Source: Mobula birostris (taxonomy: Eukaryota). From it: 64,000 bases of DNA. Location of the stretch: assembly GCF_030028105.1 (NCBI RefSeq), contig NC_092374.1, positions 186,032,638 through 186,096,637 on the forward strand. Reading direction: 5' to 3'. Shown in pieces: positions 6,770 to 37,419 of the stretch (position 1 is its first letter; each line of letters begins with the position of its first letter). Made by a program: the position numbers and the translations under genes. A model generated the notes under the pieces. That model was given only the letters and a program-made list of their open reading frames with translations, was not told the DNA's origin and did no database searches.

Positions 6770-7540
6770 AGCCGGCAGAGAGACCGCCGCTGAAAAGGGC
6801 GCCAAACTATCTTCACAAGCAGGGGGAAACCCGCTGGTGGGAAGGGTGTGAATATGCACCCCCGGGGAGGCGAGAACGGGAAGGGTTTAAAGCAGGCTGC
6901 GTGGAGTACTGTTCTGTCTCGGGTGTAAGTGAACGCATCCGTATACGTCACAGCCCCGCCCCCCCCCGCCCAGGGCCGCATACCAAGGGAGTGCTTTCAT
7001 GAGTATTATCATTTTAGATGAGTTTGGTTGCTTGTCAGCGGGGTTTCAGTTTTGTATCTGTTTATTTTGGTTAACAGCTGGTTTCTGGCCCCGCGGTGTG
7101 AGAAGAGTTCGAGGTCCCCGGGCTTTGAAGGGTCCCTGACTTCACTTTAGGTTTGGGGCAGCAGCGGTCCCGGAGTTTAATCGGCTGCCGGAGATGTGGA
7201 CGATCGCTTGCCTTTTGCTGCTGTCCCTGCATGGAGTGTGCAATAACGAAGGTAAGGAGCCTCCATGTCGGCTTTGCAAACGCATGGTCACGTTGAATTG
7301 CATCCGGTCGGCGGCATGACTTTTAAATCCGCCTCACGTTTTCCGCGTGGGATTTCAGCCGGGTGTGTTCATCCCCGACAAATAAGTTCCAAGGGCCCCG
7401 ATTTCAGACTTTCTGTGTGTAACTTCCCTGATAGTTACGTGAGAGGTCTGCTTGTATCTTGTTCAGTGAATCTCGGGGAAAGTTGTCTCGTCTTTCCAGC
7501 GTGTTTGTAAACAGCGAGGAGAAAGCGTCTGACTTCGGAC
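6770..7540 (+). promoter_or_regulatory. CpG-rich promoter/5' region of the Ig-5TM gene
   Basis: Visibly CpG-dense against an AT-rich background, with GC boxes (ccccgccc near 6955-6972). Possible non-coding exon donor gtaagt at 6925 and acceptor ttcactttag at 7150. Confidence 0.55.
7194..7251 (+). CDS. Coding exon 1, signal peptide [19 protein letters not shown]
   Basis: ATG at 7194 in gagATGt, hydrophobic core, donor GAAG|gtaagg, phase 1; lies in a CpG-rich region. Confidence 0.8.
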
Positions 7541-10500
7541 AGAGAGTAATCGGTGGAATGTGCCAATAAGTGGTGGATGAGATTTAATATAGAATAGATA
7601 ACGAGGAAAGAGAACAAAATTTTTTGAGGGCGTTAAATATAGAACATAGAATAGTACAGCACAGTACAGGCCCTTCGGCCCACACTGTTGTGCCGACCCT
7701 CAAACCCTGCCTCCCATATAAGCCCCCACGTTAGATTCCTCAATATACCTGTCTAGTAGTCTCTTAAACTTTACTAGTGTATCTGCCTCCACCACTGACT
7801 CAGGCAGTGCATTCCACGCACCAACCACACTCTGAGTAAAAAACCTTCCTCTAATAGCCCCCTTGAACTTCCCACCCCTTACCTTAAAGCCATGTCCTCT
7901 TGTATTGAGCAGTGGTGCCCTGGGGAAGAGGTGCTGGCTATCCACTCTATCTATTCCTCTTATTATCTTGGACACCTCTATCATGTCTCCTCTCATCCTC
8001 CTTCTCTCCAAAGAATAAAGCCCTAGCTCCCTTAACCTCTGATCATAATGCATATATTAATGACTTAGATGAGGGAATTAAATGCAGCATCTCCAAGTTT
8101 GTAGATGACACGAAGCTGGGCGGCAGTGTTAGTTGTGAGGAGGATGCTAAGAGGATGCAGGGTGACTTGGATAGGTTAGGTGAGTGGGCAAATTCATGGC
8201 AGATGCAATTTAATGTGGATAAATGTGGCAAAAACAGGAAAGCAGATTATTATCTGAATGGTGGCCGATTAGGAAAAGGGGAGGTGCAACGAGACCTGGG
8301 TGTCATTATACACCAGTCATTGAAAGTGGGCATGCAGGTACAGCAGGCAGTGAAAAAGGCAAATGGTATGCTGGCATTCATAGCAAGAGGATTCGAGTAC
8401 AGGAGCAGGGAGGTACTACTGCAGTTGTACAAGGCCTTGGTGAGACCACACCTGGAGTACTGTGTGCAATTTTGGTCCCCTAATCTGAGGAAAGACATTC
8501 TTGCCATAGAGGGAGTACAAAGAAGGTTCACCAGATTGATTCCTGGGATGGCAGGGCTTTCATATGATATAAGACTGTATCGACCAGGCTTATACTGTCT
8601 GGAATTTAGAAGATTGAGGGAGGGGATCTTATTGAAACATATAAAATGCTAAAGGGATTGGACAGGCTAGATGCAGGAAGATTGTTCCCGATGTTGGGGA
8701 AGTCCAGAATGAGGCATCACAGTTTGAGGATAAAGGGGAAGCCTTTTAGGACCGAGATTAGGAAAGACTTCTTCACACAGAGAGTGGTGAATCTGTGGAA
8801 TTCTTTGCCACAGGAAACAGTTGAGGTCAGTTCATTGGCTATATTTAAGAGGGAGTTAGATATGACCCTTGTGGCTAAAGGGATCGGGGGTATGGAGAGA
8901 AGGCTGGTACAGGGTTCTGAATTGGATGATCAGCCATGATCACACTGAATGGCGGTGCAGGCTCGAAGGGCTGAATGGCCTATTCCTGCACCTATTTTCT
9001 ATGTTTTCTATGTTTCTATTACACAGCTGATTGGTGTTGAAAGGTGATTGCATAGCAGATTGGATTGAAGGGTGGACATTGCCATTGTATAGAAGCACAG
9101 CTTTCAGGCTGAGCACTGAAGAATAAACAGCAAAGGCTCAATTGGGTTGTTTGGTTTTGGGTCTGCGGAGACTCCATCTTCCTCTCACCCCACTATTTCT
9201 GAACACCCTAAACCGCCCTTTTCCTCAGACATTTCCACCCCCCCAAACCGATCCCAGCTCTCATCCATCCTGGGCCTTCCCCGTTCCCTCTGATCTTCTC
9301 CTATCTGAGGCAGAACGTTCTGTACCCAGTAAGGGCCTCGCATTTGTCCCCCTGTAACCACACCTCAGTGAGTTCCACACCTACCATGACGCTGAATTCT
9401 TCTGCTGCCTTCGTTTCCCAGCCTATTTCTTTGATAAGGACGCTCCATCCCGCACCAGTGTCACCTTCTCCCATCTTCAACCCTCCTCCTCTTCCTGGAA
9501 TTCTGCTTGCCAATTGCCGACGGAACATTAACCATCTGGACTTTAACACTCTGCACTCCAATTCCAAACTCACTCCTTCTGAATCCTTTGCTCTCCACTC
9601 CCTCCACACTAATCCTAACCTCACCATCAAACCCGCAGATAGGGGGCTGCTGTAGTTGTCTGGAGAACTGGCCTTTACCTTGCTGAGGCCCAGTGACATC
9701 TCTCAGACACCTCCTCTTACTTACCCCTCAATCAGGATCCCACTAAGGAAAACCAGGCACTATCTCCCACACCATCACCAACCTTATTGACTCTGGGGAT
9801 CTTCCATCCACCATCACCAAACCCATAGTGGCTGCACCCCACACCTCCCACTTCTACCTCCTACCCAAGATCCACAAACCTGCTTGTCCAGGTAGACCCA
9901 TTGTTTCAGCTTGTTCCTGCCCCACTGAACTCATATGGGCAGACCTCCACTCTGTCTTATCCCCCCTAGTTCAGTCCCTTCTTACCTACATCTGTGACAC
10001 TTCACACGCTCTGGATCTTTTCAATGATTTCAGGTTCCCTGACCCCCATCATCTTATCTTTACTATGGATGTCCAGTCCCTATACACCTCCCTCTCCCAC
10101 CAGGAAGGCCTCAATTCTGTTCGTTTCTTTGTGCACACCAGATGCAACCCTTACACCACCACTCTCCTCCACCTAGTGGAACTTATCCTCATTCTAAACA
10201 ATTTCTCCTTTGGCTCCCCCACTTCCTTCAAACAAAAGGCGTAGCCATGGGGACTCGCATGGGTTCCAGCTATGCCTACCTTTTTGTCAGCTACATGGAA
10301 CAGTCTATTTTCCAAGCCTACATTGGTCACCACCCCACACTTTTCCTATGCTACATCGACAAGTGCATTGGTGCTGCTCCCTGCACCTGTGCTGAACTCG
10401 TCGACTTCATCCACTCTGCCATCAATTTCCACCCTGCCCTCAACCATTTCTGACATCTCCCTCCCCTTTCTCGATCTCTCTGTCTCCATCTCTGGAGACA

Positions 10501-13500
10501 GCTTATCTACTGAAGTCTGTTACAAACCCACAGCTAGCTGGACTATACCTCATCCCACCCTGTTACTTGTAAAAATGCCAACTCTTCTGTCAATTCCTCC
10601 ATCTCCTCCGCATCTGCTCTCAGGATGAGACTTTTCATTCCAGAATGAAAGAGATGTCCTCCTTCTTCAAAGAAAGGGGCATCCCTTCCTCCACCATCAA
10701 CAGTGCCCTCAACTGTATCTCTTCTATTTCACCCACGTCTGCACTCATCCCAATCTCCTGCCACCCTACAAGGGATAGGGTTCTTCTTGTCCTCAGCTAC
10801 CACACCACCAGCCTCCACATCCAGCACGTAATTCTTGAAACTTCCACCATCTCCAATGAGATCCCACCACCAAACGTATCTTTCCTCTCCTCCGCCCGCC
10901 CGACCAATTTCTGCTTTCAGCAGGGATTATTCCCTATGTGACTCCCTTGTACATTTATCCCTCCCCACTGATCTTCCTCCTGGCACTTACCCTTGCAAGC
11001 GGAACAAGTGCTACACCTGCCCCTACACCTCCTCCCTCACTACCATTCAGGGCCCCAAACAGTCCTTCCAGTTGAGGCGACACTTCACCTGTGAGTCTGT
11101 TGGGGTTATATACTGTGTCCAGTGCTCCCGATGTGGCTTCCTGTATATTGGTGAGACCTGACGTAGATTGGGAGACCGCTTCACCGAGCATCTACGGTCC
11201 ATCTACCAGAAAAAGTGGGCTGACCCATTGGCCACCCATTTTAATTCCACTTCCCATCACATTCCAACATGTCTATCCATGGCTCGCTCCACTGTCGTGA
11301 TGAGACCACACTCAGGTTGGAGGAACAACACATTATATTCTGTCTGGGTAGCCTCCAACCTGATGGCATGAACATTGATTTCTTGAACTTCTGGTAATGC
11401 CACACACCCCCTCCCCCCTTCACTATTCCCCCTCCCCTTTTCCCTCTCTCACCTTATCTCCTTGCCTGCCCATTGCCTCCCTCTGGTGCTCCTCCACCCT
11501 TTACTTTCTTCCCTGGCCATCTGTCCTCTTCTGTCAGACTCCCTCCTTCTCCACCCCTGTATGTCTTTCACCAATCAACTTCCCAGTTCTTTACCTCATC
11601 CTATCACCTCGTGTTTCTCTCTCCTCTCCCCTCCACCCACCTTTTAAATCCACTCCTCAGCTTTTTTTCTCCAGTCCTGACAGAGGGTCTCAGCCTGAAA
11701 TGTGGCCTGTCTGATGACACAAAGGTTGGGGGTGTTGTGTGGAGGGTTGTCAGAAGTTACAGCGGGACATCGATAGGATGCAGAGCTGGGCTGAGAAGTG
11801 GCAGATGGAGTTCAACCCAGATAAGCGTGAAGTGGTTCATTTTGGTAGGTCAAATTTGAAAGCAGAACACGGTATAAATGGCAAGGCTCTTGGCAGTGTG
11901 GAAGATCCGAGATATCTTGGGGTCTGTGTCCATAGGACACTCAAAGCAGGTTGACAGTGTTGTTAAGAAGGCATATAGTGTGTTGGCGTGGGATTGAGTT
12001 CAAGAGCTGTGAGGTAATGTTACAGCTATATAAGACTTGGTGAGACCCCTCTTGGAGTACTGTGTTCAGTTCTGGTCACCTCACTACAGGAAGGATGTGG
12101 GTACTATAGAGAGAGTACAGAGGAAATTTACAAGGATGTTGCCTGGATTGGAGGGTGTATCTTATGGGAATAGGTTAAGTGGACTTAGCCTTTTCTCCTT
12201 GGAGCGATGTAGAATGAGAGGTGACCTGATAGAGGTGTATAAGATGATGAGAGGCATTGATCGTGTGGATAGCCAGGGTTTTTTCCCCCAGGGCTGAAAT
12301 GGCTAACACAAGGGGGCATAGTTTTAAGGTGTTTGGAAGTAGGTACCGAGGGGATGCCAGGGGTATGTTTTTCACACAGAGGGTGGTGGGTGTGTGGAAT
12401 GCATTGCCGGCGGTGGTGGAAGCGGATACAGTAGGGTCTTTTAAGAGCCTCTTAGATGGATACATGGAGCTTAGAAAAATAGAGGGCTATGCACTAGGGA
12501 AATTCTAGGCAGTTTCTAGAGTAGGTTACATGGCCAGCACAACATTATGGGCCGAAGTGCCTGTAATGTACTGTAGATTTCTATGTTCTATGTTCTGTGT
12601 TCCACTTTTTGCTGTAGATGCTGCCTGTTCTGCTGAGTTCCTGTAGCATTTTTTGTGTGTTGCTTGGATTTCGAACATCTGCGGATTTTCTCTTGCTTTC
12701 CATTGTTGTGGGTCATGTTGGCAACCCAATGTATGCCCATGCTTGGGCAAGATAGAAAACTTTTTAACTTACATTGTGGGCAACATTTTAAATGACTTGA
12801 ATTATAAATTGAAATATCATCTATAGATGATTCCAAAATATGGTACATCATAGGGAAATCTCAAGGTGATTTTCATGATCACTAGCCCAGAATCCACAAG
12901 ATAAACCCAACCATATTCGGGAAGCATAATCTTTGTTGTCCAGTGTAATCATTCGATCACGATGCTGCATGATGGTATCTCCAAACAAGACACAGTCCAT
13001 CACAATGCATTTCAAATCATAGTCAGAGACTTCAACCTGACTTTTTTGAAGATAACCCTGCCCAATTACCACCTACATATAACCTGTAGCACCAGAGGTC
13101 CCAACACATCAAAGCACTGTTATACTCGGATAAGGAATGTTCCATGCCCAGACCACATCTCGGTAAATTCGATCGCTTGACTGTCATTCTGCCTGCATTG
13201 AGGCAGAGTCTAAAGAGCAAAGCTCCAGAGATTAGGACAACAAAGCAGCGGTTGCAGGAGACAGAGCAGCGGCTAAGGGATTGCTTTGAGTCATTAGACT
13301 AGGTTGTGTTTGAGGACTTAAAGAAACATAGAAAACCTACAGCACAATACAGGCCATTCGACCCACAAAACTGCCGAACATGTTCTTACCTTAGAAATTA
13401 CCTAGGGTTACCCATCACCCTCTATTTTTCTGAGCTGCATGTACCTGTCACTCATCTGGGCATCTGAATGAATACACCATGAAATGGACTTAAAACAGCT

Positions 13501-16500: not shown

Positions 16501-19500
16501 AGGGGCATTTGGCAGCTTTGAGTCTGTACTCTCTGGAATTTAGAAGAATGCTAGGGGATCTATTTGAAACACTGAATGTTGGAAGGACTAGATAGGGTAA
16601 ATGTGGAGTGGGTAGTTTAGAGGAAGTAGAGAGGCTACAGTGGAACTTAGATAGATTCAGAGAATGGTCAAAGAAATGGCAGATGAAATACTGTGTCGAG
16701 AAGTGTATGGTCCTGCACTTTGGTAGAAGTAGTAAAAGAATGGACTATTTTCTAGATGGAGAGAAATTCAAAAATCCGAAGTGTAAAGTGATTTGGGAGT
16801 CCTCATGCAGGATTCTCTGATGGTTAATTTGCAGGTTGAATTGGTGGTGAGGAAGGTGAATATAGTGTTAGCATTCATCTCAGGAGGACAGGAATATAAA
16901 AGCAAGGATGTAATGCTGCGGATATATAAGGCACATGAGGCCTCACGGACTATTGTGTGCAGCTTTGGGCCCCTTATTTAAGAAAGGATTTGCTGACATA
17001 GGACAGGGTTCAGAGGAGCTTCACAAGAATGATTTTGGCAATTAAATAGTTATCATCTGAGCAGCAATTATATGCTCTGGGCCTGTTCTCACAGGAAATT
17101 AGAAGAATGTGGGAGTGTTCTCATTGAAACTTATTGAATGTTGAAAGAATGTTGAATGTTTTCAGTTCTGGTCACCTCATTATAGGAAGGATGTGGAATC
17201 TATGGGGGGTGCAGAGGAGATTTACCAGGATGTTGCCTGGATTGGAAAACAAGTCTTATGAGGCAAGGTTAGCAGAGCTGGGACTTTTCTCTTTGGAGCA
17301 TAGAAGGATGAGAGGGGAATTGATAGAGGTCTACAATATTATGAGAGGCATAGATAGGGTGGATAGCCAGTACCCGTTTCCCAGGGCATGAATAGCAAAC
17401 ACCAGAGGGCATATGTACAAAGTTAAGGGAGGGAAGTTTAGGGGAGATATCAGGGGTATGTTTTTTACACAGAGGGTTGTGGGTGCCTGGAATGACTTGC
17501 CAGGGATGGTGGTGGAGGCTAAAACATTAGGGGTATTTAAGAACCTCTTGGACAGGCACGTGGATGAAAGAAAAATAGAGGGTTACGGTGTAGTGTGGGT
17601 TTAGTATGTTTCTTTTTTAAGGAATACATGGGTCGGCACAACATCGAGGGCTGAAGGGCTTGTACTGTGCTGTAGTATTCTAGTGTCTATATAGAGTGGG
17701 TGTGAAGAGAATGTTTCCTACAGTGGAGGAGTTTTGGACAAGAGAGTACAGCTTCAAACTAGAGGGACTCCATCTGAAAGCCCTTAACTCTGGGTGGAGT
17801 CATCGGACTCCGTTTTTTTAGCAGGCTTTCTTATTTTTATGAGGTTGAGTTGCTCGCTCAACGCTCAACCCAGCATAGGTGGAAAGCGTGCAAGGGAGCT
17901 GGCTGGATTCGAACTCGGGAGCCTTCACTCCGAAGTCCGGCATTGATGCCACTACACCACCAGCCGGCCGTTTGGAATAGAGCTGAGGAGGAATTTCTTT
18001 AGCCAGAGGGTGCTAAATCTGTGGAATTCATTGACACAGATGGCTGAGGAGGCCAGTTCTTTGGATGTACTTAAGGCAGAGATTCATAGGTTCTCGATTA
18101 GTCAGGATGTGAAAGTTTATGAGGAGAAGGCAGGAGAATGGGATTAAGAGGGAATGGGATCAACCATGATGAAATGGCGGATCAGGCGTGATGGGCCAAA
18201 TGGCCTAATTCTGCTCTTATGTCTTGTGGTCTCAGCTGAGGTTGATAGGTTGGCATGAAGAAGGGTCGTCAAATGTGTTTACATTTGGCAGAGGTAGACT
18301 GGGCAAACTGAATTATTAAGTTGTATTTTATTTCATCCTCGCAGCCAAAGCTACAATCCATTTGGTTTAAGTCTCATGCACCCAAGCTGCCTTCTCCTTT
18401 GCAATATTTTGACAGTTTAGCCTAGATTGAGTTAACATTGGAGAGTTAATTTTGTGTAAATTGGCTACCAGAACCAGGTTCTAAACTGTGGTGAATGGTC
18501 TTGTATCTGCTAATGTAATAGGTGCTCAATTTTGGTCATACAACCATAAGACACTGGAGCAAAATTAGGCCATTTAGCCCATTGAGTCTGATCTGCCATT
18601 TCATCACAGCAGATTTAAGATCCCTCCCAACCCATTTTTCTGCTTTCTCTCCGTAACCTTCGACACCCTTACTAATCAAGAACCCATCAACCTTCGCTTG
18701 AAATATACTCAATGACTTGGCCTCCAAAGCCATTTCATCGCAATGAATTCCACAGATTCTCCACTCTGGCTGAAGAAATCCCTCTTCATTTCTGAGGCTG
18801 CGGCTCTCCGTGTCCACTCCATCTTTGCCTTTCAATATTGAATGTGTTTCAGTAAGGTTCTCTTCCTCCCCATGCTGCCCCCATGACCACCTTCTTCTAA
18901 ACTCCAGCAAGTAGAGGCCTGGACCCAACAAACGCTCCTCGTACGCTGACCCTCTGTCACCCGGTTCCAGTGTTTCACCACTGTCTTCCCAGATTTAACA
19001 AGTTACATTTTCTTTTCTTGCCCTCATCAGTCAACAGAGAAGATGCCGTTGCAATGCTTGGTTCATCAGTTTTACTGGATTCGGAAGTCGAAGTTAACCC
19101 GCAGATGCAAGAGATCATTTGGACATTCATGAGCAGCCACAACAGCCCTGTCACCATTTTACATCACATCCCGAATTACAAGAAGTGGGCAGAGCCCAGT
19201 GAACAGTTCAAGTTGCGCCTGGGTTTTATTCTTTCCAATGGTTCTTTGATGATAAATGGATTAAAAGTCGAGGACCAAGGAGATTACAGTTTGGAGGTAG
19301 ATGACCGTGAACTGAAAATAATACATTTGTCCCTCTTCGGTGAGTACATGAATAACTGATTCAAGGTTGAAGTTTATTTAACACGTGTACAGTACTGTGC
19401 AAAAGTCTTAGGCACATAAATGTATACAGTAGCCAGGGTGCCTAAGACTTTGTGCAGTTTGATATATTATGTCTTTCCAGTTGCCAAATACTATTAGCTC

Positions 19501-22500
19501 AGTAGTATTAAGTGTTACTTGGTAACTGGAAAGACATAATATTCAGTACTCGGGCACCCTAGCTATATATATGTACTTCAGACTTTGGCACAATATTATA
19601 CATGTGGGTTTATCAACATTGGGACTGGCTCTTTAGACTATTATCTTCCTCTCAGTCAGAGACATAGATGACAACTGAAACAGGCCTTTCAGCCCACGAA
19701 TATTTTTGTTAGCCCTGACATAGCCCTTGTTATTGCTGTTCCTCACTTTGCCCTGACACCTTATTAATTGGTCATCCGTCCCATTCCTGGTACGGCTGAG
19801 GGCATATCCCAGCTTGGAACGTGAGCCACACAGACACGTGGCTGAAAGGCAAGCTCTCCCTTTCCCACACATTTGATGAAAGGTGGGAGCCACAGCAGCC
19901 GTAGTAGTTTGACGCTATGCCATCGGAGTTCAGAGTTCAATTCCGGCGCTGTCTGTGAATGTTTTTACGTCCTTCCTGTGAACACGCGGGTTTCTTCACA
20001 GTGCTCCGGTTTCCTCCCACTGTCCAAAGGCGTACTGGTTAGTGGGTTAACTGGTGATTGTAAATTGTCCCACCATTAGGCTTGGGTTAAACAGGTGGGT
20101 TGCTGGGCAGTGTGGCTCGTTGGGCTGGAAGGGTTGGTTCTGCACCGTATCCCGAAATAAATGTCATGCAGTGAGGTTTCATTGCAAGTCATCAGTTCAT
20201 AATATGTGGCATTGACTAACTGGACTCTGGAAACTCACACTCGTTCCTCAAAAACACTTTATTTACTTGTGCACAGGGAGAACTGCATGACCCCTGTCAC
20301 CGCACTGTTCTGAAGTCTGAACAGAGAAAATGCCACTGTCAGAACAAATTGAATTGCTTTACAGATATTGACCAGCTGGTACATGTTCAAGTTCCTGACT
20401 TGCAAAATTAATTGTCATTCAGGATAGTTGTTGCCTGATCCTGGAATCCTTATCTGATCTCCCTGTGCCAAATAGCTCCAGTCCCCTGCTGTGCTATGTT
20501 CTCCAAAGGCCTTCCCTAGTGACCTATCTTGGCTGCACTGACTGCACACTATCTGCATTCTGTGCTTGCCAGGACATTATCGTGACCCTTGCCTTGCTGC
20601 CCCTTCCACAGTAGCACAGTGCTTATCACATTCGCCTTACAGCGCCAGTTGTCACTGACTGCAGCTCAATTCCCGTCACCGTCCGTAGGCATTTTGTATG
20701 TTCTCCCTGTGACCGTGCGTGTTTCCTCACACATTCCGAACTGTACGGATGGTGAAAAAGGATCTAGTGCTTTCCTGGCGTATGTGATGAATAAACTGTT
20801 CTCAGACTCCCAGCCGGCTGTAGGTATCGATTTTAACCAATGTTTCAATGACAAGGTCTGCCATCTGCATCGGGAATGATGTCTGGGCATGTCTAGTCTG
20901 GTGGTATTTATACCCCTGTTGTCCCTCTCTCCTGAATGGTTAGTCCTCATCCAATCCGGTTTCCACTGAAACCCATATCAAGGAGCACAGGCAATGTATC
21001 CGTTTGGGTTACCTGGAGAAATTGGCAGTGGCAGAACATTGTGTTCACAATGGCCATAGGATTGACTTCGACGGCACAAAACTGTGCCACACCAATGGCT
21101 TTTCGGACCACCTAGTGAAGGAAGCATTTGAAATAAAACTAGAGGTAAAGAATTTTATCCAAGGCAAAGGTCTTCCTCTAGCTAAGAACTGGAATTTAGT
21201 TGTAAGCAAGGTGGGACGGCAGAAACCTGATTGGATGAGGACTAACCATTCAGGAGAGGTGGAATACAGGGGTGTAAATACCACTGGACTAGACATGCCC
21301 AGGCATCGTTCCTGATGAAGATGGCAGAGTTTGTCATCGGAACGTCAGTTAAATTCAATACCTGCACCTGGCTTGAAACCCAAGAGTTTATTCATGTACG
21401 GTTAGGGTTAGTGAGTTGTGTTTATGCTATGTTAGCGTGTCAACACGTCTGGACTGCACAATCACAAAACAACACATTTAACGATACGTTTTTGAAATAC
21501 AAATAAAGCTAGTCTTTCTGCCCTTTAGATAACCTGTTGGAAGCTAAGATATTGACCAGCTCCTCCTTCCCTGCTTCTGTTATCTGGCTCATCTGCAACG
21601 TCAGTGGAGATCCTCAGAAGTATCAATGGTGGAAAAATGGAGCGGAAATCTCCCAGTTTCACCAACTTATCGATGGCAATCGGACTCTAATGATCATGAA
21701 TGCCTCAAGACATGACTGTGGAATTTATACCTGCGCGGCAACCAATCCAGTCAGCTTCATCCAGGCTAACCACACCCTATTCATTTCTGGTGAGTTTCGT
21801 TTGTAAATCTTATTCTGAGAGTAAATTTGACATCATCGTTTAGTGGCCAGCTTTGGAAATCAATCTGTCAGCACTGGAAGTGTTAAAGTTCATAGAAATT
21901 TTGCAATCGGCAAAGAGGACATTGGGTCCTTCTTGTCTGTGCTACCTCTGAGTAATCCACCTACTCCCTTTTCCTGCTCCACAATTAAATCTGTCTCGAT
22001 TACAACAATTGTTGAGGCAAAATTCGACAACATACCCTGACCAGCTTGGATTCTTTCGCTAATCATTGTCCTTCTACATCCTCCACTTCTCAACCTCTCT
22101 GGTTTCAAATAACTCTATCAGATCTTCTCACGTCCTCCCCTATTCCACAGAGAATGGCTTCAGTCTCTTCAGTCCGCCCACACGGCTCTCAATCAAGGGC
22201 TTACCCATAGCCCTCTATTTTTCTAAGCTCCATGTACCTATCCAGGAGTCTGTTAAAAGACCCTATCGTTTTCACCTCCACCACCGCTGCCGGCAGCCCA
22301 TTCCACACACTCGCCACTCTCTGCGTAAAAACCTTACACCGCCATCTCCTCTGTACCTACTTCCAAGCACCTTAAAACTGTGTCCTCTCATGATATCCAT
22401 TTCAGTTCTGGGGAAAAAGCCTCTGACTATCCACACAATCAGTGCCTCTCATTATCTTGTACACCTCTATCAGGTCACCTCTCATCCTCTGTCACTCCAA

Positions 22501-25500: not shown

Positions 25501-28500
25501 CAGAAAACCAGCCTCACACACATACTTTCTGTCTGTATTCTATGCAGATAACCTACATCACCTTGACCCATTATCGCCGAAGCCCCGTTGAGCCAAAGCC
25601 TTCCTACTCTAGCTCCCTGTACTCTGACACCCACTTCTCCGATGACCGCTGTATAAATGTCTTCTTTTTAAACTCATCGCACTGTTCTCACTGGCTGACG
25701 TCCACGCAATTGCGCAGTCGTGCCCCGTTCAAAAGGCTGAAGACATTTTTTTTCCTCCTGATTCAGTGGACAATGAGCAAAGAGTAGTGGTTAGAAATTG
25801 AAATAATGTATTGTCATCTACCATAATCCTTGGACCGTTCTATTTTGCTGATGAGTAGCCACTTTCTGTGGATGGTAGCCATGGTAACAGTTGGTAATCT
25901 GTTTCCCTAAAAATAACCACACTAAGCCATGATATGTGCTCCTTTTAATTTGTTATTTATTTATGAGATACAGTGTGGAATATGCCCTTCGAGCCGTGCC
26001 GCCCAGCAATCCCTCGATTTAGTTCTTGCCTCATCATGGGACAATTTGCAACGATCAATTGACCTCCCAGCCAGTATGCCTTTGGACTGTGGGAGGAAAC
26101 CCTTGCAGTCAAGGGGAGAATGTACAAACTCTTTACTGGCTGCAGTGGGAATTGAACCTGGGACGCTGGTACTGTAAAGCGTTGTGCTAACCACTACACT
26201 ACCGTGTGGTCCCATGGTAACGTAGCTCTTCTACGACTTGCATCTTAATCCCTGGTCAGGTGACTTGCTGAGGAGCCGGGGTTAGCAACGTGTCTTCTGG
26301 GCCTGGGGAAAGAATATCCATCACGCCCCAAGTTTTGCATCTTCTGTCAGTTTGGAATGTTACTCAAAGTTGTTCATTCTTGGCTGGCACAGCAAGTTGC
26401 TGTCTAGTAAGTGCTCCTGAGAGGGCATGTAGAGCACGTTGGTACAGGCGTGAAGTCACAGGCTGGTGAAACGGGGCAGGGGCTGGCGCTTTCCCATCCC
26501 TGCAGGAGATGAAGGGAACAGTAGGCTTGTTGCAATTCATAGCAAATCCCTTTGTCATCTCTGTGTAACATTGTTCAAAGTTATTTTTTAATTGCAGGTT
26601 TTCATCAAGAGGACGTTGCAATAATTGTTCTGTCGGTGATCTCTTCAGTGCTTTCTATTTTGCAGTGCTCGCAGTGCTTGCTGCTGAAGACAGACAGAGG
26701 TATTTATCACTGTGTCCCAAATAAATGAAAGGAATCCTGGTTATTTTCTCGAGTTAATTTTTGTTCTTTAAGAATTGTCTCAAATAAGTGGCTGCCCTGA
26801 TTAACCGATGGCCCAGTTAACTGGAATCCACTGCACGTACTGTAGAGCTCACCATATACTAAGTGGAGTTTCATTTTCTTGCAGGCCTTTACAGGAAAGT
26901 AAAGAAATACATTCGAATTTATGAAAAACCTTTACATAAAGACTCTCGAACAGCCAATGTGCAAAAGAAAACAAATTGTGCAAATAATTTAAATAAATAA
27001 TATTGAGAACATGAGTGGTAGAGTCCTTAAAAGTGAGTCTGTAGGTTGTGGAATCAGTTTAGAGTTGAGACGAGTGAGTGAGGGGGCTAAGCACACAAAC
27101 TGTGCTGATGGTAATTGTGGAGGAGATGTCGTTGCCAATCTGAACTGACTGGGATCTGCAAGTGAGGAAATCAAGGAGGGATTGATTACAATTGTTGACT
27201 TACACAGGGAGGTATTGGGGCATTCAAATTTCAGGGCTGGAATTTGAAGGGTCACACATAGCCTCTCTCTCTCTCCCCCTCTCTCACGCATGCCCTTCTC
27301 TCGTGCACAGCACTCGCACACTCAGCTCCCTCCCTCCTTCTCTGATACGCATAAGCTCTTCAAATCCCAGTTGAGCAGCACTTCTTGGAGAGTAACGGAG
27401 GGTCCCGATAGATGCTGGACCAACCAGCAAAACCCCAATGAATTAAAAGCACCAGGGGAAGGAGAGGTGTCCCTCGGACCACATGCTGGAAGATCCCTCA
27501 AAACTGGTTCATCAGTTGCCAGTGGGCTCCCTGGACAAACACCACTTGTTCACTGCTTAGTGTCTCTGCATTCAGGCATTTTGGCCTGCAGCCCCATTTG
27601 GGGAACAGTTTCCACCCTGGACTAGAACACTGTCTAGTGCCCGAGAGCATCCGGGTACAGTGATGACCCAGTCCTCGGTCTCGCAGCAGAGTTCAGGGTG
27701 AAACTGCAACTTCTGGGCTGCTGTAGGTTAATGCTACCCCAGCTCCCATAATCATTGGGATGATGCACACATGATTCACATTGCGTCCTTTCCTCCTCCA
27801 CTGGGCTCACACACAGGGAGACTGCATTCTATCTGTCTTTTCGGTATTCAGCCCATGGATAATCAGATGGCATACTACGAGATGAGCTGTTTTCTGGTGC
27901 TTTTTGCTCCTCTCTGCTGTCTCCTCTTTGCTGCCAGTGTCCGTCAGCTCTGAGACTCCTCCAGTGCTCTGGTGGCTACTCCACCCCCGGGCTGGTATTT
28001 GAGTTGAGTGCCACCAGCAGCCTGACTCATCCCGAGTCCCACCTCCGTTACCGCGAGCTCGCTCTCTGATTCCTGTGTCCAGCCATTTATGTAGGTCTCA
28101 CATTTGGACTGTTCTGGATTTTTCTTGATTGCAGCTGTGAGGCGGGTCAAATGCTTGAGGCAGTTCCTGGGTATCTGTACCTTCATGACCTACGTCACGA
28201 CCCTCATGACCTGTGTCGCAACCCTCACCAAACTTATCCCCACGAAAGGTACGTGTGTGATGTTCTGCATGTGCATTGTTCTGATCAGTGTGGGATTCAG
28301 CACACCCCTCCACCTTCACGTCCAGCACCCAAGGACAGGCAGGGTGGGTATCTGGACTCCAGAAGGCATGTGAAGGAACTGGTAAATTAAAGGCATAATT
28401 ATAAAGCTTGGAAAACAGTTGTTGGTTCAGTGCGGGGAGCCAGTGTGTAGGGGTAACCTGCAGGGGCTGAAGTTGGTGGGATTTGGGTCATGGTGCTGTA

Positions 28501-31500
28501 CAGGAATGTGTGGTGGGCCTTTTGGAGGAAGGAGGTGGAATCTTTCGCAAGGTGATTTCCCAGGATGCTGCCTGGACTAGAGCTGGTCTCCTAGGACAGG
28601 TTGAGCGAGCTAGGTCTTTCTCATCAGTGGAAAGGGGGATGAGGGGTGACTTGAGAGAATTATACAAGGTAAGAAGCGTAGATCGAGTAAATAGCCAGAG
28701 ACTTCTTCCCCAGGGCTGAAACAAGGAGGCACAATTTTAAGATAGGTATAGAAGAGATGTTAGAGGCAGTTTTGTTTAATACACAGAGATTGGTGGGTGT
28801 GTGGAATACCCTGCCAGGGGTGGTGAAAGAGGTAGATACATTAGGGGCATATGAGAAACTCTTGGGCACTTGGAGGAGAGAAAAAATGCAAAGCTATGTA
28901 GGATGAGAGGAAAATGGAGAGTGATGAAGGAGGGATGGGTTCGATTGATCTTAGACTAGGTTAAGAGGTGGACACAACACCATCTGACAAGGGCTCTACT
29001 GTTCTGTAGAGTGCTATGCAACTGGTCCTTGGATTGACTGGGCTGATGATGTGAAATGCGACTTTACCAAGTTGGTCAAGTTTGACCGGAGAGGTGACAT
29101 TGTGAACTAACCCCCCGCCTTGTCTTTCTCCCCGGGCCTCCTGCCCCATGATCCTCTCATAATCCCTTTGCCTATCACCTGTCCAGTTCTTGGCTCCATC
29201 CCTCCCCCTCCTGTCTTCTCCTATCATTTCGGATCTCCACCTCCCCCTCCCACTTTCAAATCTCTTACTAACTCTACCTTCAGTTAGTCCTGACCAAGGG
29301 ACTCGGCCTGAAGCGTCGACTGTACCTCTTCCTAGAGATGCTGCCTGGCCTGCTGCATTACCAGCAACTTTGATGTGTGTTGGTTGGGGCATCTGGGACC
29401 AGGAGACCTGGGGCCAGGGTCAATTGCATAGTACTGTTCTGTTTGTTTTAATATTAGGAATCGCTTTTCCCCAGAGTGAAAAGAAGTAATGTTCTGTCTG
29501 GAAATTCAATGGGGCACGAGGGCATCAGTCACTTTTGCTTGGCCGGTGATGTCATTCCCTGTATGACAATTTCCGGTAGGGGAACTGCAAGTTAATTGGA
29601 CCATGCTGTCCTGGGAGTTCCCACCACTGGGCAGTCCCAGGGCCATTCTCTTTCATCACTGCAGCTCCAAACTCTAGGATGCCTTCCAGATGTTAGTCAC
29701 TGAACTTCATCCACGGGGACTTCAGAGTGTCCTGGCTTTTCTCCACCCACACCTCTGCACACCTGCTTGAATTGTTCACGTAAACATGTTTGCAACATTC
29801 AAGGTCAGGCAGCGTCTCTGTAGTGAGAGGTGGACAGTGAAATGCTGTCTACCCCCCCCCCCCACACTGTTTGCAACGACGTACCTCTTTGCACCAGTGG
29901 TGAACCCAGTGATGATTCTCCCATCATCTGAGTCGGTCTGGAGAGCCGGTGGTTCAGGTCTGTCACCGTCAGGTGGAGTGAGGTTAGAAATCTGTGTTTC
30001 CTTTTGCAGAGATGGGTGAAGGGCTGAGCTGAAGAAAGTGAACTGTGTGGAGGGGCGGAGACCAGGAGAGCCTCTCGAGTGTCTCACCCTGGTCTGGTCT
30101 ACCCACAGCTGGTGAGAGTGCAGTTCAGGGGAACAAATGCTAAGGGGTGTAACGAAAAGGAATAAAGAGAAATAAAAGAAAGAATGGCACTTCTGAACAA
30201 TCTATCACTTCTATAGATAAGATGAAGGAAATTCCTTAGTGATAATTTAGTCAATAGGCTACATAATTAAAACAATTACATCACATGGGTAATACTTGTT
30301 AAAAAGTACAAATTTTATAAAAAGTATTATTTTTAAAAAAGTGGTTTCCAACAAGAGGTTTCACCCTCAGGTGAAGCAGGTGAAAAGCAGATCCAGCATT
30401 GCCCCCTCTACAGGAACAGTATATAAAGCACAGTTCTGGGGAAGTTACAGAATGGAAATCCTGCGTCTTGTTGTTTAATTTCCCGTTTATTACTGAGTGA
30501 ACCGCTGACCATTGCTGTGGGGTCTTTGCTCCCCAGGTTCGGACCCTGTCGTAGTAGCGGTTTATTGCACAGTGTCCCTTCAGCTTCTGACTTTGGGTCT
30601 GCTGCTCGTTGTCCAGAGGCTGGACTGTTTCAGAAAGAGGGCAGGTAAGAGACTGGGTCATTCATTGTACAACCTCTCAGTGAAGGAAAGGAATGGAGGG
30701 TTATGGGCTGAGTGCAGGTCGGTGGGACTAGATGAGAGTAAGAGTTCGGCACAGACTAGAAGGGCCAGGATGGCCTATTTCCGTGCTGCAATTGTTATAT
30801 AGTTATATGGTTAATGCACTGTAATTGTCACACTTTGTATTTAACAGCTATTTGGGAAAGGACCGTAGCTGGACTTCATGTCATCGTGATCATCACTTCA
30901 GTCGTTTTTTTAGCATTATTAAGTCATCCAGACTGTGAGTTTGCCTAGAGCTCTTCATCATTGTTTATGGCAATGCATGGTTTTGATCATTTTCTTTGTT
31001 ATATACACACACACACACAGTTGGTTTATTGATCACTGCAGAGTGGTTCTCTGCTGCTTCCTGCTTCCTCCTCTCTCCTTTCCCCAACCACGATGCCCCT
31101 CTCCCTGACCCCTTCCCACTCTCAGTCCACAGTAGAGACCCATTTCAGATTCAGGTTTATCATCATTCACAAATGGCATGAAATCTGTTTAACTTTGTTT
31201 CCAGCAGCAATACATAAACTTACTACTGTACTGTCTCAAAGTGTTAGGCACCCAAGCAAGACTGTACTTAGGAGACAGAAGGGATGAACTTGGAAAAGTT
31301 AATAATTATGAAAGGCAGAGATGAGCTGGACAGTCTTTTCCCCAGGGTCGGGAAGTTGAAAACACGAGGGCATAGATTTAGGTTGAGAGGGGAAAGATCT
31401 GAAACAGACCTGAAGGACAGTTTCTTTTAAAACAGAGTGTGATCAGGGTATGGAACAATTTAACAGAGGAACAGGTTGAGACAGGTACAATACCAGAAGC

Positions 31501-33295
31501 TCTGGGAAGTGTTTAACACCTGGACAGGTACATGGAGGGACGGGCCATGCACCATCCTGTCTTTGCCATTGCTCTGTGAGTTTGCTGTGGAAGGTGCATT
31601 GGATGTTTATTGTATTGTGGATGTGGGCACTTGGTGTCAGTTTACTCAGTTTCATCATGTTGCACATTTTCAGATCAAGGCTGTGAAAGCAGCTTTATTG
31701 TCTGGATGGTATTCTTTGGAGCAGTGATCGTGGGTGCTGTGGTCTTTCTCTTCAACTTCATGGTCGAACACCGTAAGTAAATACCAAACCATTCAGCAGC
31801 TGCTGTATCGCTTCCCAGAGTAAAGACCTTCCCCCGATCTCACAGCCGCTTCAGCTCCTACGAGGGTTTCCCGGGCTCTGCTTGAGTTCCCTCACGGAGC
31901 TGCTGGCCGTGCAGGTGGGGTTTTGGACTCCTGCTGGGACGTAGAAGTGAACAACTTCCCAGCTGAACTCCAGTGATACCCCACTGGGCTCCGTGGAGAC
32001 TGATGGAGAGGTCTGACAGAGCGCAGAATAGGCCCCTCGAGCCGTGCCGTCCAGCAAACCTCAATTTAATCCGAACTTAATCACAGGACAGTTTGCAGTG
32101 GTACGTCTCTGGACTGTGGGAGGAAACCCACACGGCCATGGCGAGAGCGTACAAACTCCTTACAGGCAGTGGCGGGAATTGGACCCAGGTTGCTGGTACA
32201 GTAAAGCATTGTGCTGACCACTACATTACTGCGAAATCTGTAAAGGATCGATTTCTTAGATGGAATCAAAGATGCAAATAAAGGCATCAACACTGAAGAA
32301 ACAGCACCAGATATTTTGTTAAAATAGATTCCTACTGTTTGTCAAAATTTCATTTTATGTGTTTAGAAATTGACTAATTTACACCTAAAAATTAATACAT
32401 TGTGTGTTCATAATGCTGCTCTCTCTTGGACACTGATTCACCCAGCCCAGAGAATCTGGGGTACATACTGTGACCTCACTGTAGCACAGGGGGGCTCACC
32501 GGATCCAGAACCCATGTCTTACAGAAATTGCCCCATAACTTAAGAAAGAATTTTTTTCAGGTTTGCAATAATGAAATGTTTACAATAGTACAAGATACAG
32601 TGTGTGTTCTGAGTTAATTATGGTTGTGTTAGAGTAAATGTTGGAAATTATCATTAAAATGAAAGGACAAGGTGTTAAGGTTTATGTTGAGAATTCAGGA
32701 GAATGGTTTTGAGAGGGAAAATAAGTCAGCCATGATGGAATAGTGGAGCAGACTCGATGGGCCAAATGGTCTAGTTCTGCCCCTATGTCTTATTGTTTTA
32801 GAGGATGTGTAGGCAGGGCGATGTGATGTGGGTAGCTACAGGAAAGAGATGTTCCTGCTTTACATAAAGATTAGTTTACAAACAGCTCTTGGGAACTGAA
32901 GTCTTGTGTAACACCGGGTCTATCTGTATACAGTTACTCTTGAAGTTATAGAACTACTTTGTCTATTCACATTCCCCAGTTAACTTGTAGAGATTGCCTG
33001 TTATTGAAATATTCTCTGTGAGTTGGTACCTGGATTCCTCAGTCTGCCGCAGTCTCTGTAGGCATGTCCTTCTCTGCCTGTCACCCTTCCCCTTGGTGTG
33101 ATGCTTCTGTTGATTGACTGGGATTCACCTACTTCCTGTAACAAATGCACTTTTGTCATTTTAGTATCCTGCAGAAAGGAAAATTCTGAAATGGACCCAC
33201 CAGATCCCACAGCTTCTGATGAACTTCTGATGTCTGATTTAAAAAGCGTACATCAGTCTTCATTTTCAGACGACATTCCCAGTTCGAAGCCTTAA
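7194..33295 (+). CDS. Spliced gene model, 9 coding exons, 422 aa: signal peptide-IgV-IgC2-5TM-acidic tail (CD2/CEACAM-like ectodomain on a CD47-like pentaspan module)
   Basis: join(7194..7251,19031..19339,21529..21789,26598..26699,28135..28248,30537..30644,30848..30934,31674..31772,33165..33295). All introns are GT-AG and phase 1, and the frame is open throughout (1269 nt). Basic loops follow TM1 (KTDRAVRRVK) and TM3 (RLDCFRKR), consistent with N-out/C-in topology. The last exon is less certain. Confidence 0.8.
7637..9017. mobile_element. Two adjacent CR1 fragments in opposite orientation (7637-8052 minus; 8053-9017 plus)
   Basis: ORF 7700..8053 (minus) and ORFs 7912..8652 / 8646..8939 (plus, [16 protein letters not shown]). 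Confidence 0.9.
9165..11705 (+). mobile_element. Penelope-like retroelement (degenerate RT + GIY-YIG endonuclease + terminal repeat)
   Basis: [40 protein letters not shown] (RT); [27 protein letters not shown] (GIY-YIG). Confidence 0.92.
11712..12585 (+). mobile_element. CR1 LINE 3' fragment (second subfamily)
   Basis: ORFs 11739..11954, 12037..12297, 12257..12508. Confidence 0.9.
12950..14742 (+). mobile_element. Rex1/Babar-type non-LTR retrotransposon, internally deleted; RT C-terminal half is an open ~300-aa frame
   Basis: [44 protein letters not shown]; 3' end gggatcaataaag(tatgac)n; APE remnants upstream. Confidence 0.88.
15790..18232 (+). mobile_element. Cluster of CR1 3' fragments
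   Basis: ORFs 15817..16248, 16608..16820, 17134..17391, 17413..17604 and repeated CR1 tails. Confidence 0.85.
17768..17969 (-). mobile_element. tRNA-derived SINE inserted in a CR1 fragment
   Basis: Minus-strand head GGCCGGCTGGTGGTGTAGTGG (A box)...CTTCGGA...GAGTTCGAATCC (B box). Confidence 0.65.
18545..18960 (-). mobile_element. CR1 3' fragment just upstream of the IgV exon
   Basis: ORF 18536..18931. Confidence 0.8.
19031..19339 (+). CDS. Exon 2, V-set Ig domain without cysteines (CD2/SLAM/CEACAM N-domain type)
   Basis: Acceptor ttttcttttcttgccctcatcag|, donor TTCG|gtgagt. Motifs [34 protein letters not shown]. Confidence 0.92.
19880..20160 (+). mobile_element. Abundant SINE-like repeat (further copies ~20600-20760 +, 25960-26215 -, 32030-32232 -, 50375-50560 -, 60870-61140 +)
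   Basis: Shared core gttcaattcc...ctgtaagga gtttgtacgttct...ccggtttcctcccaca..caaag recurs in the window. Confidence 0.65.
20787..21395. mobile_element. Second-family Penelope-like fragment: GIY-YIG C-terminus with inverted terminal repeats (20787-20963 minus, 21222-21395 plus)
   Basis: [24 protein letters not shown]; the two ~175-nt arms align as reverse complements. Confidence 0.75.
21529..21789 (+). CDS. Exon 3, C2/I-set Ig domain
   Basis: Acceptor tctttctgccctttag|, donor TCTG|gtgagt. [34 protein letters not shown]; four N-glycosylation sequons (NVS, NRT, NAS, NHT). Confidence 0.92.
22170..25740 (-). mobile_element. Near full-length degenerate CR1 LINE: ORF1 (zinc finger + SGNH esterase) and ORF2 (APE + RT), antisense in intron 3
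   Basis: [32 protein letters not shown] (ORF1); VVVGDFNFP (APE); [20 protein letters not shown] (RT). Confidence 0.92.
26598..26699 (+). CDS. Exon 4, TM1 ([34 protein letters not shown])
   Basis: Acceptor ttattttttaattgcag|, donor AGAG|gtattt; 102 nt, phase 1-1; hydrophobic stretch. Confidence 0.82.
28135..28248 (+). CDS. Exon 5, TM2 ([38 protein letters not shown])
   Basis: Acceptor tttttcttgattgcag|, donor AAAG|gtacgt; 114 nt, phase 1-1. Confidence 0.82.
29120..29385 (+). mobile_element. Penelope terminal-repeat fragment
   Basis: Matches the shared repeat; degenerate hammerhead at 29286-29321. Confidence 0.8.
30537..30644 (+). CDS. Exon 6, TM3 ([36 protein letters not shown])
   Basis: Acceptor tctttgctccccag|, donor GCAG|gtaaga; 108 nt, phase 1-1. 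Confidence 0.87.
30848..30934 (+). CDS. Exon 7, TM4 ([29 protein letters not shown])
   Basis: Acceptor ctttgtatttaacag|, donor GACT|gtgagt; 87 nt, phase 1-1. Confidence 0.87.
31674..31772 (+). CDS. Exon 8, TM5 ([33 protein letters not shown])
   Basis: Acceptor ttgcacattttcag|, donor CACC|gtaagt; 99 nt, phase 1-1. Confidence 0.88.
33165..33295 (+). CDS. Putative terminal exon, acidic cytoplasmic tail ([43 protein letters not shown])
   Basis: Acceptor cttttgtcattttag| is phase-compatible and the other two frames stop early. An alternative phase-2 acceptor exists at 33174/33175. Confidence 0.55.
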
Positions 33296-33517
33296 CAGTC
33301 TGAACTCAGTCTTGATGACACCTTGGTTTCCCAGCCAAATGCTGAGTCACAGGATCTTGTGTACTGGAGAACGAAGAGAAGAGCTGTGCAGTTGAAAACG
33401 AAAGCCTGGATACGAACAACTTGGAGTCATAGAAAACTACAACACATCTCGTCCGTGCTGAACCATTTCAATTGCCTAGTCCATCGACCTGCACCCCAAA
33501 CATCCAGAGGTTCATAG

Positions 33518-34521
33518 TGTCACGAACCCCGTGACCGGAATGAAGAACCAGCAGAGATGGAAAACACTTTGGAGTCTAGTATTGCTATAAACTAATAATA
33601 TTTATTCCTAACTATGCAATACAGTAAGATAAATGTAGATGAATCAAACCGGTTAGCAACGATTATTGTTACATGCGCAAGAAGATCTGTTTTTTTTTGT
33701 GAGAATGATGTAATGGTCTTTTGGAGGTCACCTGATGTGATTTTCCCGCCGATGTGAGGTCACGTGATGACACGTGCACCATGAGTATATAAGGGTCGAC
33801 CCAGGTGACGCAGTTGGTTTTTAGTTTGTAGATTTCCAGGTAGAACGTGCTGTATCTCCGTTTCTGTTGCGTGTTTGTTTTTGTGACGCAGTTTCATTTT
33901 TAAAACGGAGTGTTGCGTTCGGTTGCAAGATACCATATTATTGGACTGGAAATTTTTGCTGGATGTGTCGATTTACTCAATTCCAACAGTAGAAGGGAGA
34001 GTGAAGAATTTATCGAAGTACAGGATCGAGAGGAGTCGGCATCTTTTGGCAGTTTAATAAAGGATCGAACTTATTGAGTCTTCGTTAGAGGAGTACGACC
34101 TGCATCGAGGATAACTCTTGCCAAACAGAGCAAGGAGTTCATGCAAAAAGGTGCTCTCTCTCTCTAAAGGAATTTAAGGTCAGTCGATTTAAACTGTTTA
34201 TTTTCGGCATCGTGAATCCTGTGGACAGAACCAGCAGGAAAGTTTCATCTGTGAAGAAACCCTTCTCCAGAGAAGTCTCTCCCAATTGAACGTGTAAATG
34301 TGTTGGACTTTCGAAGTTATCGCTTTAAGAACTGTTTTCGCATTTAACGCTTTTAAGAACCAGAGCTGAGTGATGGGTTGCTGAACGGCTGCGTACCTGT
34401 TAACTTCCAGTTAAAGTTTTCGTTTGTTTTTTTCCTTATCGTTTATCCGTGTTTAATAAATGCTTGGTTGTTTTTATATAACCTGTCTCGGTTGATATTC
34501 ATTGTTGCCAGTTACGTAACA
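33518..34521 (+). repeat. 5' LTR of a Gypsy element (~1.0 kb)
   Basis: TGTCACGAAC...GTTACGTAACA termini, TATA-like tatataa at ~33786, aataaa at ~34455; followed by PBS TGGGGGCTCGT (34529-34539, complementary to the tRNA-Pro 3' end). Confidence 0.9.
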
Positions 34522-36589: not shown

Positions 36590-37275
36590 CGTGTAGCACT
36601 TGTTCCGCTTACAAGGATAAGTGACAGGAGGGAGATCGGTGGGGAGGGATGGGGGGGACGAATGGACAAGGGAGTTGCATAGGGAGCGATCCCTGCGGAA
36701 AGCGGGGGGGGGGGGAGGGAAAGATGTGCTTAGTGGTGGGATTCCCATTCTGATATGTCTATTCACGGCCTCCTCTACTGTCAAGATGAAGCCACACTCA
36801 GGTTGATGGAACAACACCTTATATTCCGTCTGGGTAGCCTCCAACCTGATGGCATGAACATTGACTTCTCAAACTTCCGCTAATGCCCCACCTCCCCCTC
36901 GTACCCCATCCGTCCCTCTGTCTCTCTCACTATACCCCTTGCCCATCCTCTAGGCTTCCCCCCTCCCCCTTTTCTTTCTCCCTAGGCCTCCTGTCCCATG
37001 ATCCTCTCATATCTCTTTTGCTAATCAACTGTCCAGCTCTTGGCTCCATCCCTCCCCCTCCTGTCTTCTCCTATCCTTTTGGATCTCCCCCTCCCGCTCC
37101 CACTTTCAAATCTCTTACTAGCTCTTCTTTCAGTTAGTCCTGACAAAGGGTCTTGGCCTGAAACGTGGACTGCACCTCTTCCTAGAGATGCTGCCTGGCC
37201 TGCTGCGTTCACCAGCAACTTTTATGTGTGTTGCTTGAAATTCCAGCATCTGCAGATTTCCTCGTTTTTGCATTT
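36590..37275 (+). mobile_element. Penelope-like 3' fragment with terminal repeat (preceded by a short inverted piece)
   Basis: Similarity to 10900-11705; hammerhead variant at 37136-37171. Confidence 0.8.
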
Positions 37276-37419
37276 GAAAAATAAATGTGCTAGGTTTTCT
37301 AAAATTGACTCCCTCTACCTTAGGCCTCGGCCACAAACTTATCAATCACCCCTCGTATTATATCTACAACTTACTGATCACACTGAGCTGTAGATATAAT
37401 AATTTTTTTTTCATCCAAG

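Follow-up and report, generated by a model that had tools for sequence, protein, structure and literature searches.

The 64,000-nucleotide stretch of contig NC_092374.1 from the manta ray Mobula birostris that we analyzed (hereafter, the window) is repeat-rich vertebrate DNA with zero N. On its plus strand, from position 7194 to 33295, lies a gene of nine exons, which total 1269 nt and encode a protein of 422 amino acids (aa) followed by a TAA stop codon. Here, we establish the exon structure, transcripts, domain folds, five helices, and family distribution of this gene, which is a new architectural variant within the known surface proteins of the immunoglobulin superfamily (IgSF), predicted by RefSeq and uncharacterized.

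The gene model was rebuilt from the list of open reading frames (ORFs) and the raw sequence of the window. All eight introns are of the GT..AG kind and phase 1, and each of the internal exons (309, 261, 102, 114, 108, 87, and 99 nt) is divisible by 3. An earlier annotation made from the sequence alone (the first-pass annotation) had proposed nine GT-AG exons joining into one 422-aa frame without a functional name, and this was borne out, as the joined product is letter-for-letter identical to XP_072115176.1 (P0176), which is listed as "uncharacterized protein isoform X1" of Mobula birostris. The same annotation had described the gene as hidden among repeats and easy to miss. The introns do hold repeats, among them fragments of long interspersed nuclear elements (LINEs). 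However, the gene was not missed: the NCBI pipeline had already predicted it, though without a functional name, giving both the exact protein and a second isoform (X2, XP_072115177.1; P0169), identical to our model in which the exon for the fourth transmembrane (TM) helix is skipped.

Exon 1 (7194..7251, donor AAG/gtaagg) supplies the start codon and the signal peptide (residues 1-19 and the first base of codon 20). By tblastn, this leader is 100% identical to that of the paralogue P0168, and it is kept in the Hemitrygon and Hypanus orthologues. Exon 2 (19031..19339) encodes a V-type immunoglobulin (Ig) domain (residues 20-122; Pfam V-set, E 2.5e-07) with one N-glycosylation sequon and no cysteine (Cys), and exon 3 (21529..21789) encodes a C2-type Ig domain (residues 123-209; Pfam Ig_3, E 2e-11, and I-set, E 6.7e-11) with four sequons. 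There follow five short exons with one helix apiece, all of them joined by RNA junctions. Exon 4 (26598..26699) comprises TM1 and the start of a basic cytoplasmic loop, the remainder of which precedes TM2 in exon 5 (28135..28248); exon 6 (30537..30644) contains TM3 and a second basic cytoplasmic loop; TM4 is encoded by a cassette exon, exon 7 (30848..30934), which both RefSeq isoform X2 and a minor RNA contig lack; and exon 8 (31674..31772) encodes the extracellular TM4-TM5 loop with Cys350 (Y-Q-G-C-E-S-S) and then TM5. The coding part of exon 9 (33165..33295) specifies an acidic, Ser-rich cytoplasmic tail of 43 aa and ends with the stop codon at 33293-33295, whilst its 3' untranslated region reaches at least ~33571. 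We place the acceptor of this exon at 33165 (ttttag/TATCC) because the frame requires it; use of another acceptor close by, at 33179, would cause a frameshift. No further exons of the family were found by tblastn within the window.

Transcript data came from four runs (X1-X4) of one study of the same organism, the spliced contigs of which match the window with 0 mismatches. Five junctions were read directly in contigs: 19339/21529 (in all four runs), 26699/28135, 28248/30537, and 30934/31674 (each in X1-X4), as well as 30644/30848. The first-pass annotation had staked its model on spliced reads joining exon 3 to the TM exons and on transcripts that do not halt after TM1. Both were found. Positions 21789 and 26598 are record positions 575 and 576 of one X3 contig (identified by its run, its length of 899 nt, and its depth of 26.5), from which we deduce the junction 21789/26598; since this contig places the two positions side by side, the Ig exons are physically linked to the TM exons. 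In addition, single contigs in the four runs span the IgV, IgC2, and TM1-TM4 exons, and another contig joins TM4 to TM5. The eight junctions for which mapping had been proposed are thus covered to different degrees, five directly and one by adjacency, whereas 7251/19031 and 31772/33165 are supported indirectly, through the RefSeq model and through the conservation of leader and tail in the Hemitrygon and Hypanus orthologues. Near the 3' end, an X4 contig extends 407 nt past exon 8 without a match to 31773-32499, and 100% of the sampled words of 33165-33571 were found in X1 and X3. A different TM2 exon at 27817-27936, which yields an open 388-aa, four-helix model lacking 30537-30644, was rejected, as the RNA contigs use 28135-28248 and 30537-30644.

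The form that includes the TM4 exon was present in all four runs. The alternative junction 30644/31674, which skips it, occurred in X3 only, at a depth of 8.5 versus 12.3 for inclusion. Since every TM exon is phase 1 and has a length divisible by 3, such skipping keeps the frame, and it would leave four helices with a frustrated topology. Gnomon isoforms of other species also omit single TM exons (e.g., Pristis P0010 and Hemitrygon P0173).

The predicted protein has the layout that had been proposed for it, namely a signal peptide, IgV, IgC2, five helices, and an acidic tail, as judged by Pfam, hydropathy, AlphaFold, and the identity to the RefSeq entry. In an AlphaFold model of the full-length protein made with the family alignment (predicted local distance difference test [pLDDT] 76), two beta-sandwich domains are followed by five long helices. 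The V exon also comes near to the threshold for Pfam Receptor_2B4 (20.2 bits, with the cut-off at 21 bits). Besides the canonical pair Cys145-Cys191, the C2 exon encodes a further cysteine, Cys186, which lies in the motif D-C-G-x-Y-x-C. When the model was searched with Foldseek, the best target TM-scores were those of CD58 (0.78), CD2 (0.76), CD48 (0.74), and NTB-A (0.73), and the other ectodomain matches included CEACAM1b, CEACAM15, 2B4, SLAM, HEPACAM, HEPACAM2, CLMP, CAR, and JAM. With a V exon devoid of Cys and these proteins at the top, the ectodomain is of the CD2/SLAM/CEACAM type, as the first-pass annotation had supposed.

The membrane part is predicted to have five spans rather than fewer. 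Hydropathy gave five peaks (residues 216-234, 254-272, 286-304, 324-342, and 354-372, one in each of exons 4 to 8), and these coincide with the five AlphaFold helices (213-238, 245-281, 285-309, 311-342, and 353-387). There are six Lys and Arg residues in the TM1-TM2 loop and five in the TM3-TM4 loop, compared with two in the TM2-TM3 loop and none in the TM4-TM5 loop. Based on these counts (the positive-inside rule), and since all five sequons fall in the ectodomain, we predict that the N-terminus lies outside and the tail inside. Pfam found no match on the single TM exons, the membrane region, or the tail.

The tail has no tyrosine, and an immunoreceptor tyrosine-based switch motif (ITSM; T-x-Y-x-x-V/I) was found in none of the 12 family tails examined. 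It is also shorter than that of several relatives. The TAA at 33293-33295 replaces a Gln of the Mobula hypostoma, Hemitrygon, and Hypanus proteins, the tails of which are ~37-48 residues longer, and an in-frame remnant of the longer tail persists past the stop codon on the plus strand (33296..33355), where the read-through Q-S-E-L-S-L-D-D-T-L-V-S-Q-P-N-A-E-S-Q matches the extended tails in the sister species. Because the same early stop is common to all four M. birostris paralogues, it is a shared and tolerated state.

The gene, together with at least three near-identical paralogues in M. birostris, belongs to a multigene family that has so far been found only in cartilaginous fishes. When 1.84 billion representatives were searched with the IgV exon, 175 matches were returned, 13 of them below 1e-30. 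The proteins encoded by at least three further M. birostris genes are 92-96% identical to the 422-aa product, and the Hemitrygon and Hypanus orthologues are 69-75% identical to it; the family profile detects shark and ray members at E values of 1e-100 to 1e-200. The first-pass annotation had envisaged a lineage-specific family, and every multi-pass relative with a nameable source is indeed chondrichthyan. They come from six batoid genera (Mobula, Hemitrygon, Hypanus, Pristis, Amblyraja, and Rhinoraja), from at least nine shark genera, and from Callorhinchus milii, whose protein P0260 has the same layout as that of M. birostris. The members share collinear full-length similarity, which includes the multi-pass module, and a G-C-[ED] motif in the loop, and we refer to them as the V-C2-5TM family. 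A word-based search with the TM module of Callorhinchus recovered the query alone and carries no information on bony vertebrates. Its conservation between chimaeras and manta rays would make the family more than 400 million years old, if one takes the standard date of that split.

Runs of consecutive LOC numbers point to many genes per genome. In a maximum-likelihood tree of 39 members, batoid and shark genes fall into separate groups with starred support, orthologous subfamilies extend across ray genera, and the four genes of M. birostris cluster in a single clade that excludes the M. hypostoma genes, a pattern that argues for recent duplication or gene conversion. The changes between close paralogues are distributed unevenly. 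When compared with its nearest paralogue (P0177), the protein differs at 11 of 103 residues in IgV and 3 of 87 in C2, and at only 1 of the 213 residues of the TM region and tail. The distal V domain may be the ligand-binding face, and we take it as such because it diverges between paralogues far faster than the remaining protein. The Hemitrygon akajei protein P0025 is a single-pass relative that combines a similar V-C2 ectodomain with a third Ig-like domain, and its tail carries T-P-Y-A-E-L, which is ITSM-like, and V-E-Y-A-T-V, which resembles an immunoreceptor tyrosine-based inhibitory motif (ITIM). Judging from these motifs, the wider family may include signaling receptors beside the five-pass forms.

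The automatic names that NCBI gives to the relatives are varied ("uncharacterized protein," "hepatocyte cell adhesion molecule-like," "HEPACAM family member 2-like," and "CD48-like"). A limited search of the literature on CD47 or the IgSF in sharks, on CEACAM in Callorhinchus, and on SLAM/CD2 in sharks found no description of the V-C2-5TM family.

With CD47 as the textbook exception, surface proteins of the IgSF nearly always cross the membrane once or are anchored by a lipid. Likewise, the proteins that the ectodomain resembles most are anchored in another way. The CD2/SLAM group (CD2, CD48, CD58, SLAMF6/NTB-A, and 2B4) shares with the Mobula protein a V domain without a disulfide followed by C2, TM-scores of 0.73-0.78, the near-threshold Receptor_2B4 match, and an arrangement in tandem gene clusters. 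However, its members are single-pass or attached through glycosylphosphatidylinositol (GPI), and the SLAM receptors have ITSM tyrosines, whereas the Mobula protein has five spans, a tail without tyrosine, and three cysteines in its C2 domain. Similarly, CEACAM and HEPACAM proteins combine a disulfide-less N-terminal V-like domain with a C2-type domain (Foldseek matches to CEACAM1b, CEACAM15, HEPACAM, and HEPACAM2), and the CEACAMs too show fast lineage-specific expansion, but they are single-pass or GPI-anchored, with no demonstrated orthology and an identity of only 18-26% over the Ig part. Relatives of the Mobula gene often receive names from these two families in automatic annotation. The mouse SKINT proteins (Skint1-11) do carry IgV and IgC on a multi-pass region and are encoded by a multigene cluster, and Skint7 aligns over the whole model (rank 30). 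In contrast to the Mobula protein, they cross the membrane three times and their ectodomain, which has canonical disulfides, is of the B7/butyrophilin type, and the TM-score of Skint7 is 0.34-0.36.

We consider it probable that this is an intact, transcribed manta gene for a glycosylated surface protein, consisting of a signal peptide, a CD2/SLAM/CEACAM-type V domain, a C2 domain, a five-helix bundle, and an acidic, Ser-rich tail, that serves as a recognition ligand or co-receptor. A role in cell-cell recognition as a ligand or co-receptor is the most likely one because the tail lacks a signaling motif. In such a scheme, binding of a partner in trans would fall to the distal V domain, a disulfide between Cys186 and Cys350 would fasten the C2 domain to the bundle, and any signaling would proceed via lateral contacts of the five-helix bundle. 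The mode of action would most likely be functionally analogous to that of CD47 or CD48, without demonstrable kinship to CD47, and the pattern of expansion makes an immune role plausible.

The putative disulfide was suggested by the way in which its two cysteines occur across the family. The extra C2 Cys and the Cys of the TM4-TM5 loop, the latter being conserved across the family, are found together in 45 of the 60 proteins scored as five-pass, and both are lost in P0034 and P0038; by comparison, the extra C2 Cys is rare in single-pass or soluble relatives (4 of 37). By analogy with CD47, whose Ig domain is pinned to the TM4-TM5 loop, such a bond might pin the C2 domain to the bundle.

There are a number of observations that count against the interpretation of the gene as an intact recognition ligand or co-receptor with a pinned C2 domain. 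The cysteine counts just given are not phylogenetically independent, the detection of the loop is crude for larger proteins, and P0022 keeps the loop Cys without the C2 Cys. The runs were only guessed to be RNA and one of them was flagged as "probably DNA"; we read the spliced contigs as transcripts, and a processed retrocopy would yield the same joins. Gene conversion of the 3' half, and not constraint, could explain why the TM region changes so slowly between paralogues. Finally, the skipping of TM exons in annotated isoforms casts doubt on the fixity of the five-pass topology.

A different view of the family is that it is a very divergent homologue of CD47, as its sister group or co-orthologue, and that its members are self ligands for SIRP-like inhibitory receptors. 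On this view, a single ancestor would have given rise both to the proximal Ig domain and five helices of the family and to the IgV and multiple-membrane-spanning domain of CD47. We regard this as unlikely, although the likeness in layout is considerable. In both, an Ig domain sits directly on five helices, followed by a short tail without tyrosine motifs. The CD47 gene has a leader exon, an Ig exon, and then one short exon per helix, and the Mobula gene shows the same order with two Ig exons, its helix exons all being phase 1. The constant exons of CD47 encode the ectodomain and membrane domain, and exons 8-13 encode the tail (PMC10902115). The co-varying cysteines of the chondrichthyan proteins, which lie in the proximal Ig domain and the TM4-TM5 loop, respectively, occupy places equivalent to Cys33 and Cys263 of CD47. 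The bond between the latter two joins the IgV of CD47 to the membrane domain, and without it ligand binding and signaling are not normal (PMC10902115). The proximal C2 domain also gave matches to PF08204 (V-set_CD47), but these were below threshold (E 0.013-0.059, 13.6-15.7 bits against a 21-bit cut-off) and carry little weight.

The first-pass annotation had spoken of a CD47-like membrane module, and whilst this stands as an architectural analogy, ancestry did not find support. PF04549 had no match in 25 isolated TM modules of the family at E<=10, being absent from the 25 Pfam families listed for them, nor in 8 full-length members at E<=5, and at E<=10 a profile of the TM module did not retrieve any PDB chain. 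Among the best 50 Foldseek matches in PDB, the best 30 in Swiss-Prot-AFDB, and the best 50 in BFVD, there was neither CD47 nor any of its poxviral homologues, and CD47 was absent from both VIA-align lists, in which the 40%-identity representative may be an IgV-only CD47 chain. The matches of the TM-only model (pLDDT 76, predicted TM-score [pTM] 0.66) in Foldseek PDB, Swiss-Prot-AFDB, BFVD, ESM Atlas, and VIA-align were at the noise level for helical bundles; in ESM Atlas, searching with the TM region by feature returned nothing usable, and searching by shape returned generic helical bundles only. As an artificial gp41 five-helix bundle ranked best (Z 14.7), the module looks like a generic up-and-down bundle. 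The ectodomains differ as well: CD47 has a single IgV, whereas the Mobula protein has a distal V without a disulfide and, next to the membrane, a domain that is C2/I-set and not V-set. Furthermore, the Mobula protein comes from a multigene family, of which each genome has many copies. How much the missed CD47 signal is worth depends on the pace of the module itself. With the batoid TM profile, members from sharks are hardly found (best E 5e-07, many >0.1), and since the module evolves so fast, the missed signal does not weigh heavily against a distant homology to CD47.

A more specific version of common descent, in which the chondrichthyan V-C2-5TM family and CD47 arose from one ancestral "Ig on five helices" gene and cartilaginous fishes retained the two-Ig version and expanded it into a diversified set of self-markers or paired ligands, seems to us a slightly longer shot still. 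To our knowledge, CD47 has so far been an orphan among cellular proteins. If the two did share an ancestor, the chondrichthyan proteins would be its first cellular relatives and would offer a route to study the origin of the "don't-eat-me" system.

It is also conceivable, and in our estimation improbable, that the protein has no immune role and acts as a junctional or adhesion molecule of the HEPACAM, CLMP, CAR, or JAM kind, engaged in homophilic tissue adhesion, with the five-pass module as merely an unusual anchor. The HEPACAM-type names of the relatives would be in keeping with such a function, as would the presence of HEPACAM, HEPACAM2, CLMP, CAR, and JAM among the good Foldseek matches. 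However, IgSF genes for junctional adhesion are typically conserved and present as single copies, whereas in this family each genome has many tandem paralogues, clades are lineage-specific, and the V domain changes fast. That domain, moreover, lacks the canonical disulfide, as in CD2, SLAM, and CEACAM proteins, and the single-pass relative P0025 has its ITSM-like and ITIM-like tyrosine motifs.

Lastly, the notion that the gene is a decaying or non-functional copy, its frame and transcripts being leftovers of a recent duplication from which no protein is made or used, can draw on the very recent paralogues (92-96% identity), the stop codon that shortens the tail relative to the sister species, and the frustrated topology expected of the TM4-skipped transcript, but is very hard to reconcile with an intact 422-codon frame over nine exons with consensus splice sites, an early stop shared by all four M. 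birostris paralogues, and a full-length form in all four runs against a skipped form in one.

Cartilaginous fishes thus carry a whole expanded family in which a CD2/SLAM-type two-domain ectodomain is set on five helices. Nature has here provided an experiment on why an Ig domain should be tethered to a multi-pass bundle, and the family supplies candidate recognition molecules in the oldest jawed-vertebrate immune systems, as well as a concrete case on which ideas about the origin of CD47 can be tested. In genome annotation, the genes of this family carry misleading names, such as "HEPACAM-like," "CD48-like," and "contactin-like."

Rfam found no RNA family in the whole window. Introns 1 and 3 (7700-18900 and 22000-25700), as well as 37400-40300, contain LINE fragments on both strands, including a reverse-transcriptase ORF (13693-14592; RVT_1), an endonuclease fragment on the minus strand (24127-24621), and a better-preserved reverse transcriptase (39027-39683; E 4.5e-27). 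Downstream of the gene, at 34629-36395 and 44119-45473, there are ORFs that resemble remnants of retroelement gag and protease (no Pfam match), together with a transposase-like ORF that has a sub-threshold match to DUF4371 (23 bits against a 32.1-bit cut-off). Intronic repeat copies at 22100-24900, 29100-29500, 30500-30900, and 32100-32300 showed very high summed contig depth in the RNA runs, up to ~128,000 at 29300-29499; they probably represent interspersed repeats that are transcribed in abundance, rather than parts of the gene. One such element (29111-29359; repeat family D3) recurs at 36961 and 41911.

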